63,270 nt of DNA, filler included, from Reticulomyxa filosa (GCA_000512085.1; 19 parts of 19 records of this genome joined end to end with filler, not necessarily neighbours in it), one strand, 5' to 3'; shown: positions 29,526-37,738, counted from the first letter of the whole stretch. Notes: generated by a model from the letters alone, not told the origin. Program-made: numbers and translations.

Positions 29526-29626
29526 NNNNNNNNNNNNNNNNNNNNNNNNNNNNNNNNNNNNNNNNNNNNTTAATTAATTAANNNNNNNNNNNNNNNNNNN
29601 NNNNNNNNNNNNNNNNNNNNNNNNNA

Positions 29627-31784
29627 ATGAAAAAAAAAGTCTCTGTGGCAGTATTCTGTATCGCCATGGGATTGGCGGCGCTGTTTTTAATGCGATGGCT
29701 TGTACTAGTATGCGTGTGGTATTTCAACCTGAAAGAAAACGACGTAACGGCACAAGAGAATGCCACAGGAACCAATGACAGCGTTGACAATGGCATTCAT
29801 GGCAACGGTTCAGCTCCTTCCATTGCCCAGTCGGACAAGTGGTGCCATCTCTCCACGTTTTTCACGCTCTTTTCTCTCGTGTTATTGTTATTCAATGTCA
29901 GTCTCTTTTTCTTCTTTTATAATCAATCTATATCTCTTTTACAAATAACAAATAACTACAATAATAATAATTTTTATTATTATTATTATTATTATTGTTG
30001 TTGAACAAAGGCTGCAGTTATCCTGTACTTGGCACAAACCGATAACAACGGTTGGAACACGCGGACAACAGAGATACTGGTGTCAATATTTGAAGCAGAT
30101 CACGCAGTGTTGTACGGTCTGGTGCTTGTCGCAGTGTGGTTGTTCAACCCAAAAAAAAAGGATCTACACGAGTTGGAAATTCCACATCGGATCTCACCCG
30201 AAAAAGTCACTGTCTTCCATCATCCCGATGGGACTATTACCACTGTCACTGCTGGAGGTAACTTTATATTACGTACATATATATGTATATATACGTATAT
30301 GTATGTATACGTATATATGTGTATGTCTAAATTGTCAGCAACAGCGGAAGACGCCGAGAAATTGAAGAAATGGTACAAAGTATCATTTGGAAAAGATGAC
30401 GACGAGGACCAAGAGAACCTGCTGACATTGCGAGAACACCGACGAACGAACACGCTGACAACAGACACAAGTTCGCCACAGCGCCACGAGGGACCCTATG
30501 TTTCGCACACGAACGAATACAAGAGTACGAATCTTCATAATCAGAACGAAACGGACAATGACGATGATGAGGACGAAGATGAGGATGAAGAGGAAGAGGT
30601 CGAAGAAGACGAAGACGACGATGAGGACAACGAAAATGATTACGGCGACGACGATGGCAACGCAAGCAGGCCTGCAAACCACATTGAAGCAACGCCATTA
30701 GAAAAAGGCAAGCGAAGAGGAGGAGTGCATTACGAGAAAAGCAATAGAAATGAAGAAGATTCGAGACAGGACATGGAGGAAACTGATGAAGACGATGACA
30801 ATGACAATGATAATGATAATGATAATGATAATGATAATGATAACAGTCATGAAATGCAACAACACTTTCAACCTATGCCATTTGCAAATGAAAAAGATAG
30901 AAATGGATTTGCTCCGATGATTATAATTAACCCCCATCCAAACCTGGCCCCACAAAATGATAATGCCGCCACAGCAGCAGCGACGGCGACGCAACACATT
31001 TGGTACGATTTGAACCAGAATAGCAATGGGGCCGTACCCTTCCAAGACACGCGAAGGGCCATGTCCACAAATCTGTTTGTTACCACAGCCGCACCGACAC
31101 AGCAGCCGTCGCACACTCGAATCCCGACGTATCCGCATACGCATAGTCTCGTCATCCCCAACGGTGGCCCGCAGAACATGTATCTCACGCAAGAAGACAT
31201 GTTCAATCGCGTTCAAGGTGCCTATGTCCAGCGAGGTCCCAACGCACACGACCTGCAGTATAACGACTCCTGGCAAGATAATCTCGATCCAGACAACAAC
31301 CGAAAGAGAAGAGAGAGCAAGGTATGTACTTTTTTCAAATGACATTGCATCAAAAAAATCAATTGAATATATATGTGTATATGTATATATTCAATTGGTT
31401 TTGTGTTTGATCAGATATTGCAAGAGGACCGACCATCGATACAAGAATTAGAATTGGAGTCGGTAGTGTCAAGTTTGACCGGTCTGCCAACAATCCCTCA
31501 ATGTTCGCATATGGACGTTGGCCAAGACATTTTTATACAGCAGCAGCAAGAACAACATCAACACCAAAAGCAACAACAGCAACAACAAATAACATTTCAA
31601 CAATCGTCCCCCGTATCTGACGTACCTTCTCCACAGCAAGTACAGGCTCAGATGCAATCGCAGACTCCGACTCAGATACAAATTCAGACACAAGCACAGA
31701 CACCGACGCAGCTGCAGACACCGACACCGACACAAGCGCAACTCCAACAGCAACAGCAACAGCAACAGCAACAACAGCAACAGC

Positions 31785-31821
<37 letters not shown>

Positions 31822-33297
31822 GCAACAGCAACAACAACAACAACAGCAACCACAGCCATCGCTTATATTTTACAGTCCTTTGCCTTGCCCACCCTATTAC
31901 GGGGCACTTGAAATGGACCATCAAGGTGGCCAAGGCCATCCAGTGCAACTGACTGTACCCATGGCGGTACCGATGAATTGGGCCCCTACGCTGGTAGGTG
32001 GTGGCTACATGCAGGCGCCATTGCCGCCACTGCCGACGGCCACAACGATCCTGCAGCAACGGCAGAGCAACCACATGCGTGTCCAAGCGGACGAGGAGGA
32101 CGACCAGGAAGAACTTTCTTCTGTTCATCGCTCGCCTTCGAACACAGAAACCATTGCTAGCGATCAAACGCCTTCCCTTCCGCTTCAAAATACTTTTATA
32201 AACGCCTCGTTCAAGAACAAACAGACACGCCCTTCTCGCGTTGTCTCCAACAGTCATTCGCAACAACACTTCCCTCCAACGTCGATGCAAAATACCACCC
32301 ATGTCCATCATGACTACGACCAACATTATAACCCGGTCAATAACCACATTGTCGCTGGTAATATCAATGATGGCAATGGTGACAATGGTGACAATGATGA
32401 CAATGGTGACAATGATGACAATGATAATGATGATGACAATGATGATAACGATGATGATGATGATGGCGAGGATGACGAGGATGAAGATCAAGATGAAGAG
32501 GAAGAAGATCATAATCCAGTTCATCTTGCATCTGCTTCACGAAAGCAAGGTTCGTAAAAATATATGTATGTATGTATACGTATCTAGGTGTGCAGTTGTT
32601 TTTTTTTTACACAGACCAAACCTTTTATTTGTAACATATCTGCAATAGATATTCCACATTACAACCCATTTGTAGGGTCCAATCAGTTGGCATTGGACAA
32701 TAACCAACTCAGAGAGAACAATGCACATGCAAGATCTTTAGAGAAACAAATGGGCTCAATTGTCGATACCAAAACTATTGAAGAGTACGACGAAGAAGAA
32801 AAAATGTATATAGTTCGTGGTACTGCAAGCAAAAGTAGTGTCAATCATGACGCCGCAAAAACTTATTCAAGAAAAACAGGAGATGAAAGAGAAGTGTCAG
32901 CTGCACATTCGTACTATCGCAGTCACCCACATTTCAATAGCGAAGACAAACATTCCAAGAATCATTTGCCCAGATTTGGCAATCAAATGGAAAACTTTGA
33001 CGAAACAAATGGTACAAGATTTTCGCAAAATGGGATGTCTAGTGAAAATGTAAAAATTCAAGAAAATGAACTGATTCTTTCAAAAACTCAAAATCAAAGT
33101 GGCGATGCCACAAATAACTTTGACACAAATCAAATTCAAAATACAAGACCTGAGGATGTTGCACAAATGTTATGTTCTTGACTCTGTTGTTGTGTTCATT
33201 CATGTCTTTTTTTTTCATATAAATTGTAATGTTTTTTATTGATGACAGAAGATACGAATTTCGACACGCAAATGCTAATTCAATAGATGAAATGTAA
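29627..33297 (+). CDS. Multi-pass membrane protein (GPCR/TOM1-like?) with a very long acidic, polyQ cytoplasmic tail, 5' partial
   Basis: Two hydrophobic helices, then ~900 aa of low complexity. Frame-preserving introns 29839-30010, 30258-30338, 31322-31414, 32550-32648 and ~33169-33248. Confidence 0.65.
31745..31849 (+). repeat. (CAA/CAG)n coding polyglutamine tract
   Basis: About 35 consecutive Gln codons. Confidence 0.95.
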
Positions 33298-33743
33298 ATC
33301 ATTACTAATATTTTTCTTTTTGCTTTTTTTCCTCTCTTTCATTTGTTTTTCGCCAATGCCTTTCTCCGTTTGTGCTAGTCACATCGTGCTTCTTTTTTTG
33401 TTGTTTATTTACTGCTTTGTGTTTGCTTGTTTTTTGTTTGTTTGTGATGAGGTGTGTTATCCAATTATTGTACGTTTTTTCATCCCAAAGTCTTAACCAT
33501 ACTATTTCGAAATAGGTGGCGCAGTGTTAACGAGTGATCCAACACTTTCAAAAAATAGTCTCTCAACTCACAAAAACATGATTCAATATTTTATTTGAAC
33601 AAAATTGATTTGAATATTTTCAAAAGATTTTTGTCAGAAAAAAAGAGAAATTTTCTGTCAAAATTGTAAGATTTAGGGAAAGTAATTGTTTCAAATATAA
33701 AAGAGCAGGAAAAAGAGACTAAATTTAATTAAGGTACTCGAGC

Positions 33744-34770
33744 TTATGAAATAAATGATGATAAATCATAGCCGTTGCTTTTATCAATAATTTTCAACAA
33801 AGAGGACAGACTCTCCTGGTCAAAAATATTCAAAGGAATAAACGAGATCAATCCAAAACTTTCAATTAAATTTGCCATTTCAGAGTTCATCTCTTGAAAT
33901 TTTTTGGCAGTGGTACTGAGCGTACCACTGTTATCACTCATTCTATCAATAAATCGGTACAAATCCAGGCCATCGCAATAGTAGTCTATCGAAAAGGCCA
34001 TTGAATCTTCGAAGTTTTTCAAAAGGTCCATTCTTAATGTTTGTGTAGGTAGTAGTTGCAAATTATATTGTTTCAGGCAAATTACAAACTTCAAAAAAAA
34101 AAAAAAAAAAAAGGTGTGTAAGCATATAACACATGGCAATGATAACTTGGACAGCACATTGACGTGTGGCATTTCCAGATGCAACATCATCGTCAACGAC
34201 ATCATAACCAAGCTGATATATTGAAACTGATTTACACGATCACTAATGCAATGATGAATATCACAAACGTTGACACAAGTCAGCCGATAGTTCCATTGGT
34301 ACAACATGCATTGAACAATATCTCGCATAAAGCCATGATTGATGTATAATTCCACTTGCCCAGGGCAGTCAAAGATCAAATAAATCTCATCATCTCCATG
34401 CTCGACACGGTTAGCAGTACGAAGCAAATCCAATTTATGTCGCAACCACAACATATTTTGTGACAAGTACTCCATACAATAAATCAATCCACCATTGGGT
34501 CCTAGTTCAAAAGCATCCATTCCTTCCTCCAAGGAAATCAATTCCTTGATATCCGCACCAACAAAGTGGTCATATCCCAATTTGCCGTAATCGTTGTCGG
34601 GATCCAAGTTGATAATCTTAACCAAGCGTTTGTGTTTGTCTTGAGATTCTAATTGTGATGAGGAATCAGCTGGAGCGGATGTGTCTTGTGACAGATATTG
34701 GCACATTGTTACGCAATAAGTAGTTTTACCACTCCCTGGAGGTCCAATCACAAATTGTCCATAATAGATC
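33744..34770 (-). CDS. GPN2: GPN-loop GTPase 2 domain
   Basis: YYGQFVIGPPGSGKTTYC, NLDP, LGPNGGLIYCMEYL, FDCPGQVELY, LEMPHVNVLSK|MDLL (114-nt intron 34033-34146), IDKSNGY. There is no in-frame ATG between the upstream stops and the P-loop. Confidence 0.92.
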
Positions 34771-34931
34771 CCATGGTCACTTTCATCATCCCCTTCCTCT
34801 TCTTTTTTCTCCTTTTCGTCCCCTTTGCACTGCCTCTTTTTGTTGCATTTGATTTGGCAAAAGTGTCATTAAACATAGCTTCAAACAAGTCTTGTGGCGG
34901 TGGCTCATTGATGTTTGCCATTGTCTTTTTA

Positions 34932-35618
34932 TCACTGTTGTCGGTTTCGGCCTCTCTTATTTTCGTTTTTTTTTTGTTGGTTTGCCAGGTCTTTGTCACT
35001 TTCATACCACCGCTTTTGCTTATTTTGTGCTTTGGCGTTCTCCTGTTTCTCAAATGCTTTTTTCTCCAATATCATCCTCAAACTTTCGCTTTCCTCTTTT
35101 GCTTGGACATTTTGAGGTTGTAACTTCAATGCTTTTTCAAAGTCTTTTTTTGTTTGTTTTTGATTGGTTGCTAAATTTTTTTTTATATTTTATTCTATGT
35201 TTTTATGCTCATCTTGCTCTCATACCTTGCAAGGCGGATTTGAATTTACCCAGACATTTGTATGCAGTTGCTCTTCTAAGATATGATTTCACGTGCTTAT
35301 CGTCTATTTTTAATGACTCGTTACTGTCGCTTATTGATTCATTAAACCTGTGGCGTTCATACATACAATATACATACATTACAGCATTCTCATTGAATCT
35401 TTCCTTTTGGTAACTAGTCTTTTCTGTTGTTTATTGCCCTTCTGTTAAACCAACTTGCCAATTTTCAAGTATGCCATGGCTCGATTTGCCCACGCTGTTG
35501 CGTCTCTTCTGTTTTCTTGAATATATTTCGTATAGCATTCGATGGCTTCTGTATAGTTTCCCTCCTTATATTTTTGATTTCCTTCATCTTTAAAATTTTT
35601 TGCTGAATTATTTGCCAT
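34932..35618 (-). CDS. Three-TPR carboxylate-clamp domain (RPAP3/Tah1/SPAG1-like), probably the N-terminus of the GPN2 gene
   Basis: Spliced with introns 35348-35454 and 35144-35225: MANNSAKNFKDEGNQKYKEGNYTEAIECYTKYIQENRRDATAWANRAMAYLKIGKFNESISDSNESLKIDDKHVKSYLRRATAYKCLGKFKSALQDFEKALKLQPQN. Clamp residues K, N, N, K, R are present. Confidence 0.88.
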
Positions 35619-35803
35619 TGCCGATTATTCGCACCCCCAGTTTTTCTTTTTCCTGGTTCAAGCACATGGTAGAAACTAAAAAAAATTAAAATAGTTAAGT
35701 AAAAATGCAAATTTAGAAGCAAAAAGATACACTATTAAATTTTAATCTATTCTTTTAATCAACTAATCTGAAAACACGAAAAATAAATATTTTTTTTTTA
35801 GAG

Positions 35804-36152
35804 ATGAAGGCGCCAAAGACGCCAATCTTGCTAAAGTTTTGCCCGCCTCGTCCAAAATAGACATAGTACGCATAAATATAAAAAAAAGAAAAGCACTGCC
35901 TCTCTTCATCGCTGTGGCATACCAACTGGGCATTTATATTTCTATTGATAGGCCAAATGTGCATTTGAACTTCGTTCGGAATTTTCGAATATGATTTATT
36001 TGCTTTTGTGTGTTTTTGATAATATGGCCCATTTGAAGTTCGTGCTGGTTCAATGTTCGAATTTTGAAAGTGTTTCATGCTGGAACATGTATGTAGGACG
36101 AGGACCTACAGTGTTAAGCGAAGTTCCAAAAGGAACTGTGAAACCCTATTGA
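35804..36152 (+). CDS. Putative small 3-exon membrane protein (~70-76 aa), missed by the ORF track
   Basis: MKAPKTPILLK|KALPLFIAVAYQLGIYISIDRPN(VHLNF)|FVLVQCSNFESVSCWNMYVGRGPTVLSEVPKGTVKPY*. GT-AG introns 35836-35888 and a second ending ~36038. Confidence 0.4.
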
Positions 36153-37738
36153 GTCAAACTTCTTTTCAAAACCAACACTCAAACCTACTTGTTGTTCTTG
36201 TTGTTTCTCATTTTGTTTTCTTCTTAATTTAGCTTTTGTTTTATTTTGAAATTGGCACAAAAGAGTTATTTCCTTTTCATATTACACTTGTCTGATGCAA
36301 AGTAGCTGCCTCACTCTCCCTATATGTATTTGGCCATTTTGTTCTTCCCTTTTGAGTTAGCTTTACTTTGCCAGAGAGATGTCAGTATTTACGTCAATGC
36401 AATTTTTAGTTCAGCAATTGATTTTCTTTTTTATTTAATGAAACTTTAATGAATAAAAAGGGAATAAGAGTATACTAAGATCGATGCTAGAACCGATTTC
36501 AGATTTTACTAACGTTTAGTGCTCTTTTAAATATTTTCCATTATTGATCGCGACAATCAAAGAACATATAATCTGTGATACAATTTCATTTGCGACTATA
36601 ATCAAGGAAGAGCACATTTTTGGTTTCTTAGTGATTTTTTTTGTAAAGGAAGGGTCTGTTGCGGTAGCGGCAATTGCATGTTACAGAATGTTGAAAGGGA
36701 TGAAAAGGGCTTACATTTTATAAATTAGTATTGCAATCTCCATTGAGAAAATGCAAAACTTTGGTAAAATAAGCAATCAAAGGAGGCTTCGTGTCAGATC
36801 AAAGGTAGTAACTTTTTGCATTACACTTAGTACCAGCTACATTCTTTCAGTAACTCTTTGGATATGGTAATTATCATGTTTACATTTTGCTGTTTTGAAA
36901 GAGCAAAAAGTAAAATGTGCACTTACCATAAGCAACAATCNNNNNNNNNNNNNNNNNNNNNNNNNNNNNNNNNNNNNNNNNNNNTTAATTAATTAANNNN
37001 NNNNNNNNNNNNNNNNNNNNNNNNNNNNNNNNNNNNNNNNTGTAGAGTAAAATGTCTGGAGAGTGGAATGAGCAAACACGGACAATCAAAGAAAAAATTA
37101 ATAAATTGATAAGAAAAATTGTTCTTTTTTTTTTTTTACATCAAAAATTTTGGAATAATGTTATTGAATACAACATCTCAGTCAAAACCTTCTTTATAAA
37201 TAACAATTACGACCCAAATTTTGATTTGACGCGTTAATTTTCACAAAGTTATTTGCTGCCTTTTCAAAGTTCATGGTATGTCGTATTTGGCTCAACGCAC
37301 ATTTGGTTTGATCAAAAACACAAGTCGTCCCATTCTTTTTAAAATTGTTATTAAATTGATAAAGAAAATACAAAAATTTGATTTTTTCTGCAATGACAAT
37401 AAGTTATTTTAATTGGCTAGTTTTTTTATCCACTAGGAAACGCTTTTGGAAAAACAATCAAAAACAGTGAATGAATGCCATAAAGCAAAAATATACTTTT
37501 CTTATTATTTTTTTGTGATTGAACAAATGGTTGAATTAGCTTGACAATAGTTGACTAAGAAATTAAAAATGGTGAATATTACAAACATCAGCCCTTTTGA
37601 ATTTTGCACTATTTCGCCAAAATAGAAGAAGATTTGAAAAGGATATCAAGAATTGGAGAATTAAAGAAATTGTAAACTAACTGATACAAAAAAAAAAGGA
37701 AAACAGTTTTTTTTATATAAATTTTTTCTAAGAGTTCA

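Follow-up and report, generated by a model that had tools for sequence, protein, structure and literature searches.

A predicted fusion of an RPAP3-like tetratricopeptide repeat domain to GPN-loop GTPase 2 in Reticulomyxa filosa and other foraminifera

One contig of the foraminiferan Reticulomyxa filosa (GCA_000512085.1) carries, on the minus strand, a three-exon domain of three tetratricopeptide repeats (TPRs, 35618-34936) that is immediately followed by a GPN-loop GTPase (34833-33744). The contig lies in the window, by which we mean the whole 63,270-nucleotide (nt) stretch of DNA that was analyzed; all coordinates are positions in that stretch, and the feature described here is on the minus strand throughout unless marked (+). 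Assembly of RNA polymerase II requires the GTPases GPN1-3 as well as the Hsp90 co-chaperone R2TP/RPAP3. An earlier note on this DNA had proposed that the TPR domain and the GTPase form a genuine fusion, and this proposal is now supported by the architecture of relatives, by TPR matches to RPAP3 and SPAG1, and by an intact, invariant carboxylate clamp. We consider it very likely that one R. filosa gene encodes a single protein of ∼490-520 amino acids (aa), which consists of a clamp-type TPR domain, a linker, and a complete GPN2-type GTPase. The linker is charged, about 85-120 residues long, and probably disordered.

The introns of the gene were placed by homology, using a profile of seven intact fusion homologues (alignment A1) against all minus-strand fragments between stop codons. 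The profile is colinear with the locus from 35618 to 33759, far beyond chance (Table 1). Minus-strand translation and Pfam also bear out the spliced domain of three TPRs that had been placed just upstream of GPN2 on the same strand. The TPR frame begins with an ATG at 35618, preceded at a distance of 9 nt by a TAA in the same frame, and exon 3 stops immediately ahead of a TGA at 34934-34932. Intron 1 is the sole GT-AG pair that yields KIGK/FNESISD (the slash marks the exon junction), a sequence colinear with the homologues' KLGKYHNADAD. Removal of intron 2 gives KSALQ/DFEKALKLQPQN, again colinear with the homologues, and removal of intron 3 gives VNVLSK/MDLLKNFEDS, colinear with VNVLSKCDLVENYEES of the homologues. 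Because intron 3 is in frame and free of stops, it is translated by open reading frame (ORF) finders and in the GenBank model alike. The resulting five-exon model has 489 aa, within the size range of the homologues, and scores 501.6 bits against the homologue profile. Joined spliced models were scored by local scripts against the A1 profile only, while database searches were carried out with single exons or with homologue proteins.

Table 1. Features of the TPR-GPN2 locus of R. filosa, in positions of the whole stretch
Feature	Coordinates	Strand	Description
Contig	29626-36940	(-) for the feature	7315 nt; carries the TPR-GPN2 feature
Exon 1	35455-35618	(-)	start codon, TPR repeat 1, first helix of repeat 2; K10, N14, N45
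Intron 1	35348-35454	(-)	107 nt, GTTGGT...CACAG, phase 2
Exon 2	35226-35347	(-)	remainder of TPR repeat 2, start of repeat 3; K75, R79 (VKSYLRR)
Intron 2	35144-35225	(-)	82 nt, GTATGA...AAAAAG, phase 1
Exon 3	34936-35143	(-)	end of TPR repeat 3, capping helix, basic (K/Q/N-rich) linker start
A10 homopolymer	34966-34975	(-)	read from the sequence
Frame-1 ORF	34748-35053	(-)	101 codons; covers the gap separating the two frame-2 ORFs, with overlap at each end
Junction	34834-34935	(-)	either a 102-nt in-frame intron or frame-1 coding sequence
Exon 4	34147-34833	(-)	acidic linker end and GPN2 core: GPPGSGKT, LGPNGG, DCPGQVE, NVLSK
Intron 3	34033-34146	(-)	114 nt, GTTATC...TTAAG, phase 2; long T run inside
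Exon 5	33744-34032	(-)	C-terminal part of GPN2 domain and stop codon 33746-33744
Profile positions 1-55	35618-35454	(-)	47.5 bits
Profile positions 49-97	35367-35221	(-)	35.1 bits
Profile positions 89-160	35165-34968	(-)	21.6 bits
Profile positions 165-364	34817-34137	(-)	264 bits
Profile positions 361-454	34034-33759	(-)	78.9 bits

The N-terminal domain resembles the TPRs of RPAP3. Exon 1 matches Pfam TPR_1/TPR_2/TPR_11, and TPR matches are found in exons 1 and 2. The AlphaFold model of a metagenomic homologue, P0002, has seven predicted helices (H9-135) with a predicted local distance difference test (pLDDT) score >90, as expected of three repeats and a capping helix. Against the PDB, the best natural matches of the TPR region from the homologue of Nonionella stella were RPAP3 TPR2 (86.9 bits) and TPR1 (83.4 bits), followed by SPAG1, STIP1/Hop, At1g56440, and PP5. 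The R. filosa exons behave similarly, with RPAP3 residues 282-329 as the best natural match of exon 1, and SPAG1 (best natural), OM64, At1g56440, and PP5 among those of exon 2. In a Foldseek search, the TPR part of the P0002 model aligned with RPAP3 TPR1 bound to the peptide SRMEEVD (template modeling (TM) score 0.94, 40% identity), and this predicted structure also matched RPAP3 TPR2 and SPAG1 TPR3. Clamp-type TPR domains with three repeats dock onto the EEVD tails of Hsp90 and Hsp70, as RPAP3 does within R2TP during RNA polymerase II assembly. The five clamp residues (K10, N14, N45, K75, and R79, encoded by exons 1-2) are all present in the R. filosa protein, their equivalents K13, N17, N48, K78, and R82 are invariant across the seven homologues of A1, and they align with K286, N290, N321, K351, and R355 of RPAP3 TPR2. 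The PDB matches and these five invariant residues support the earlier assignment of an RPAP3-type TPR domain with an intact clamp. Membership of the RPAP3 family itself was rejected. The protein has a single TPR domain, and Pfam scans of the locus pieces and of the homologues P0003 and P0005 found no RPAP3_C domain; it is best described as having an RPAP3-like TPR without being RPAP3.

The C-terminal half is a GPN-loop GTPase. ATP_bind_1 (PF03029) matches 34865-34146 with 135.2 bits, against a cut-off of 27, and exon 5 covers positions 166-239 of the same family. The P-loop GPPGSGKT and the GPN loop ELGPNGG are present in the R. filosa translation and invariant in the seven homologues, as are the DCPGQ and LSKxD motifs in A1. 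All named proteins in the best 120 matches of the GTPase ORF are GPN-loop GTPase 2 (36-39% identity), and by these names the GTPase appears closest to GPN2 rather than to GPN1 or GPN3. Its best PDB match is GPN3 (9t5j, 108 bits), and sequence comparison found no other eukaryotic relative with a solved structure. The AlphaFold model of P0002 is predicted to adopt the GPN fold, with Foldseek matches to Npa3 (5hci, TM 0.81) and to the archaeal GPN proteins 7zhf (Sulfolobus) and PAB0955; in this model, linker residues 137-178 are of low confidence and the GPN domain has pLDDT values of 60-88. Two peculiarities of the R. filosa copy should be noted. An ∼16-residue Ser/Asp-rich insertion (SQDTSAPADSSSQLESQDKHK) follows the P-loop helix (∼34630-34690) and is not present in other fusion members or in stand-alone GPN2. 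The R. filosa protein also ends right after a conserved DKSNGYDL motif (33744-33790), whereas the other fusion proteins extend 50-70 mostly acidic residues beyond it, for which a long helix is predicted with low confidence. The R. filosa gene may have a missed 3' exon.

Independent relatives with the same TPR plus ATP_bind_1 architecture, for which the earlier note had suggested a search, were found as continuous ORFs or transcripts. With the GTPase ORF as query, the best matches after the R. filosa protein itself are seven proteins of 481-515 aa that contain TPR families and PF03029, and a profile search contributed another two fusion proteins (378 and 437 aa). This layout is confined to ∼10 clusters when the top 8000 candidates from a collection of 5.8 billion proteins are considered, and those below them in the profile ranking are all stand-alone GPN2 of ∼300-320 aa. 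When the TPR region of P0003 was used in a word search for a separate foraminiferal RPAP3, the matches were the fusions and, besides them, a single unrelated TPR protein. The named members are from N. stella EP01083 (512 aa) and Bolivina argentea EP01084 (378 aa, partial), both rotaliid foraminifera whose proteins come from EukProt transcriptome sets. P0002 is an uninterrupted, intronless ORF of 1539 nt on an 11.7-kb metagenome scaffold, where it adjoins CAP-Gly and RasGEF genes, and P0005 is encoded on a transcript-like contig of 1607 nt with a short stop-containing leader and a 3' trailer. Its presence in a monothalamid (R. filosa) as well as in these two rotaliids means that the fusion is old within Foraminifera.

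A maximum-likelihood tree of the GPN domain placed ten fusion proteins on one side of a branch with 98/99 support, versus 13 stand-alone GPN2 from animals, fungi, plants, a green alga, and a heterolobosean (rhizarian stand-alone GPN2 were not included). This topology fits a single origin of the fusion, although with this sampling of sequences the split may coincide with taxonomy. P0005, P0007, and P0122 form a second, more divergent fusion group that is ∼42% identical to the rotaliid-like group, derives from contigs of 1.4-1.8 kb of the Joint Genome Institute (JGI), including L003 (JGI 3300019023), and falls on the fusion side of the tree outside the Nonionella/Bolivina group. The fusion may extend beyond the sampled foraminifera.

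In the contig as assembled, the frame is interrupted between the two halves. The last TPR exon and GPN2 share one frame (codon starts at 2 mod 3), as had been stated. The earlier description of ∼180 nt of stop-containing separation holds in part: six in-frame stops are present, but all of them fall within 69 nt (34934-34866), and outside this stretch every exon is open. The GTPase indeed has no in-frame ATG, its frame being open from 34865 with no ATG before the P-loop (∼34745). The alternative start MANINEPPP, with its ATG at 34921, was likewise recovered 10 nt past the TPR stop, in frame 1 (1 mod 3).

This arrangement could be read as two adjacent genes that arose by secondary fission of an ancestral fusion, namely a TPR protein ending at TGA 34934 and a GPN2 that starts at ATG 34921 and reaches the GTPase frame via one indel error or a tiny intron. 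The TPR ORF does stop as assembled, the ATG lies 10 nt downstream in a frame that is open to 34748, and one frame correction is needed instead of two; because the GTPase half lacks its own ATG, even a separate GPN2 still needs that correction. However, 10 nt is too short for a 3' end and a promoter, and the median intergenic distance of the R. filosa genome is 426 bp (PMC13746701). All other members found consist of one ORF, including those of two foraminifera deeply diverged from R. filosa. In addition, the frame-1 ORF starts 130 nt before ATG 34921, inside the TPR-frame ORF, which is a better fit to a frame slip than to a new start. On these grounds, ATG 34921 was rejected as a separate start, and we regard two genes as improbable.

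Our best explanation is a single gene in which the apparent break is a property of the draft contig or of splicing, not of the gene. Both repairs proposed in the earlier note, an intron of a length divisible by three and two compensating homopolymer errors, are candidates. For the first, an enumeration gave 14 GT..AG pairs that leave an open frame at the junction. A single in-frame intron at 34935-34834 (102 nt) or 34935-34780 (156 nt), with the MANINEPPP frame then non-coding, is a serious candidate that we nevertheless hold to be somewhat short of probable. The 102-nt version (GTGATA...AAGAG, phase 2) excises all six stops, and its donor dinucleotide spans the boundary between the last CAG, which supplies the G, and the TGA, which supplies the T. 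It requires no sequencing error, has GT..AG ends, is within the size range of the contig's six other introns (65-114 nt) and compatible with the species average of 87 nt (PMC13746701), and leads to the 489-aa model described above with a linker length near that of the homologues. Its acceptor, however, is GAG (G at -3), while those of the six other introns are CAG or AAG. Moreover, both other frames are free of stops across the junction stretch, an A10 run sits exactly at the needed frame-slip site, and the frame-1 peptide fits the homologue profile.

The frame-1 junction peptide (MANINEPPPQDLFEAMFND...) contains a segment, EAETDNS...QDLFEAMFNDTFAK, that aligns to the linker helix of the homologues (...F(R)EMFEN...). 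It scored 505.6 bits versus a shuffle mean of 500.5, beating 986 of 1000 shuffles (14 reached the real score), and models that include it scored 505.6-507.4 bits. For a frame-0 control peptide, the real score was reached by 48 of 500 shuffles. Pairwise local alignment of the homologue linkers with the three junction frames was weak, with z-scores of at most 2.9, and the base composition of the junction stretch was not distinguishable from that of exons or introns. A model with X at both breaks scored 484 bits, the longer insertion lowering the score. Should the linker continue in frame 1, a one-base miscall is most likely to have occurred in the A10 run. Dropping one A lets the TPR frame continue as ...QQKKTKIREAE..., similar to the homologue sequence K(R)KTKI(R/K)KIE. 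Frame 1 would be entered by a one-base miscall at this run (34975-34966) or by the 55-nt intron of the GenBank model, and would be left by a one-base miscall in an A/G run at 34841-34790 or by an implausibly short intron of 29-38 nt. The 29-nt intron of the GenBank model was rejected as far smaller than the introns seen on the contig. The assembly was presumably made from 454 reads. We place the frame-1 linker slightly ahead of the single in-frame intron; neither alters the main conclusion.

Several points weigh against a single gene. As assembled, six in-frame stops part the TPR and GTPase halves, the in-frame intron has the deviant GAG acceptor, and the two-error solution requires two independent miscalls. 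At 55 and 29 nt, the junction introns of the GenBank model are shorter than the 65-114 nt of the contig and than the species average of 87 nt (PMC13746701). Two scans of metagenomes for closer relatives, one with the GTPase part and one with an exact pattern over the A10 run with a variable gap, were both blank. For R. filosa, the one-gene model is a prediction from sequence. The binding of EEVD tails and the link to polymerase assembly are suggested by what is known of the families (PMC8136413). The searches described above do establish the domain layout, the intactness of the motifs, and the fact that other foraminifera share this architecture.

A broken frame could also indicate a decaying pseudogene copy or a mis-assembled chimera, with a functional GPN2 elsewhere in the genome, and the assembly is indeed fragmented (50,809 scaffolds, N50 3.6 kb, 30% repeats). 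This would be hard to reconcile with exons that are open outside the 69-nt stretch, with the intact P-loop, GPN, DCPGQ, and clamp K-N-N-K-R motifs, and with the GT-AG ends of all three homology-placed introns. The order and orientation of the parts are identical to those of the intact homologues, which is not expected of a chimera, and, as a weak point, no second R. filosa GPN2 was found among the best 120 matches. We consider this explanation very unlikely.

The locus already has an automatic gene model. ETO20903.1 (RFI_16307; UniProt X6N4T6, 'GPN-loop GTPase 2', 567 aa) is the best protein match, with 98% identity, and joins the TPR domain and GPN2 in one model. This model translates portions of introns 1 and 2 together with the whole of intron 3, which contributes 38 junk residues (LSLPCVICLHTFFFFFFLK...), and crosses the junction with the 55-nt and 29-nt introns. 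Against the homologue profile, it scored 441 bits versus 501-507 bits for the revised models. The earlier note did not recall the architecture as having been described. This stands for the literature, in that a full-text search on GPN2, TPR, and fusion found no paper describing it, but not for the databases, where the automatic model exists. Reviews of R2TP and of polymerase biogenesis treat GPN proteins as stand-alone (PMC8136413 among them). In our view, the domains and the pathway are known, and what is undescribed in the literature found is their lineage-restricted combination, present as automatic predictions in GenBank, UniProt, and EukProt.

Further observations concern the rest of the contig. 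Three of its introns have lengths divisible by three, of 114 nt (34033-34146), 81 nt (30258-30338 (+)), and 93 nt (31322-31414 (+)), and plain ORF finding reads through the 114-nt and 81-nt introns, which have no in-frame stop. A TA/TG microsatellite (TGTATGTATATA-like) occurs in four introns, at 35360-35400, 30270-30325 (+), 31370-31395 (+), and 32560-32580 (+); the 102-nt junction candidate has none. A convergent second gene at 30029-33181 (+) consists of three consecutive same-frame ORFs (437, 394, and 197 aa) with short apparent GT-AG introns between them. Its product is of very low complexity, with D/E/N runs, N-D dipeptide repeats, and, near 31800-31900, a polyglutamine tract of ∼40 residues, and it has no Pfam family above threshold.

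With stand-alone GPN2 (yeast Gpn2 and human GPN2, ∼300-350 aa), the C-terminal 300 residues of the R. filosa protein share PF03029, the P-loop, the GPN loop, and DCPGQ; the stand-alone proteins do not have the N-terminal TPR domain and the linker of roughly 70-120 residues, nor the insertion after the P-loop helix and the short C terminus of the R. filosa copy. The TPR domain of the fusion scores 83-87 bits and shows ∼40% identity to the TPRs of RPAP3 (Spaghetti), the TPR subunit of R2TP/PAQosome with the paralogue SPAG1, which acts in RNA polymerase II assembly, the same pathway as GPN2. RPAP3, however, has two TPR domains and an RPAP3_C domain that binds RUVBL2, while the fusion protein has one TPR domain and a GTPase instead; because it carries no RPAP3_C, nothing indicates binding of RUVBL1/2. 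Tah1, the yeast R2TP adaptor, is likewise a small single TPR module that docks Hsp90 (exon 1 match, 32 bits), but it has two repeats and a Pih1-binding tail, acts in trans, and is a weaker match than RPAP3. A system of the same design is PP5/PPT1, whose TPR is among the good matches of the fusion TPR and in which an N-terminal three-repeat EEVD-clamp TPR is fused to an enzyme for Hsp90-bound clients. There, the partner is a phosphatase and not a GPN GTPase, and the TPR autoinhibits the enzyme.

In yeast, Gpn2 cooperates with Rba50 to assemble the Rpb3 subcomplex, and the localization of RNA polymerases II and III depends on it (PMC8136413). In the fusion protein, the TPR clamp would bind the C-terminal EEVD tail of Hsp90 and/or Hsp70, and the bound chaperone would be brought in cis to subunits held by GPN2, or GPN2 to subunits bound by the chaperone. 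The cargo of yeast GPN2 comprises the Rpb3 subassembly of RNA polymerase II and subunits of RNA polymerase III. A chaperone dock that is normally supplied in trans by RPAP3/R2TP would thereby be built into the assembly GTPase of foraminifera. To our knowledge, the connection between the GTPases and the chaperones in polymerase assembly is poorly understood.

Judged by sequence comparison, the fusion of an RPAP3-like clamp to GPN2 is conserved and under selection, because the clamp and GTPase motifs are invariant across deeply diverged foraminifera. It provides comparative evidence for GPN2 working at an Hsp90/Hsp70-bound step and leads to the prediction of a GPN2-Hsp90 or GPN2-RPAP3 handover in model organisms. 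It also serves as a clean lineage marker for foraminifera and corrects the mis-modelled X6N4T6. As a tentative, more speculative proposal, Foraminifera, and perhaps the wider Retaria, might have hard-wired an RPAP3-type Hsp90/Hsp70 dock onto GPN2, making GPN2 itself a co-chaperone. If true, this would be a Rosetta-stone argument that GPN2 in all eukaryotes exchanges polymerase subassemblies directly with Hsp90/Hsp70, and the fused GPN2 might partly replace R2TP/RPAP3 in the foraminiferal lineage.

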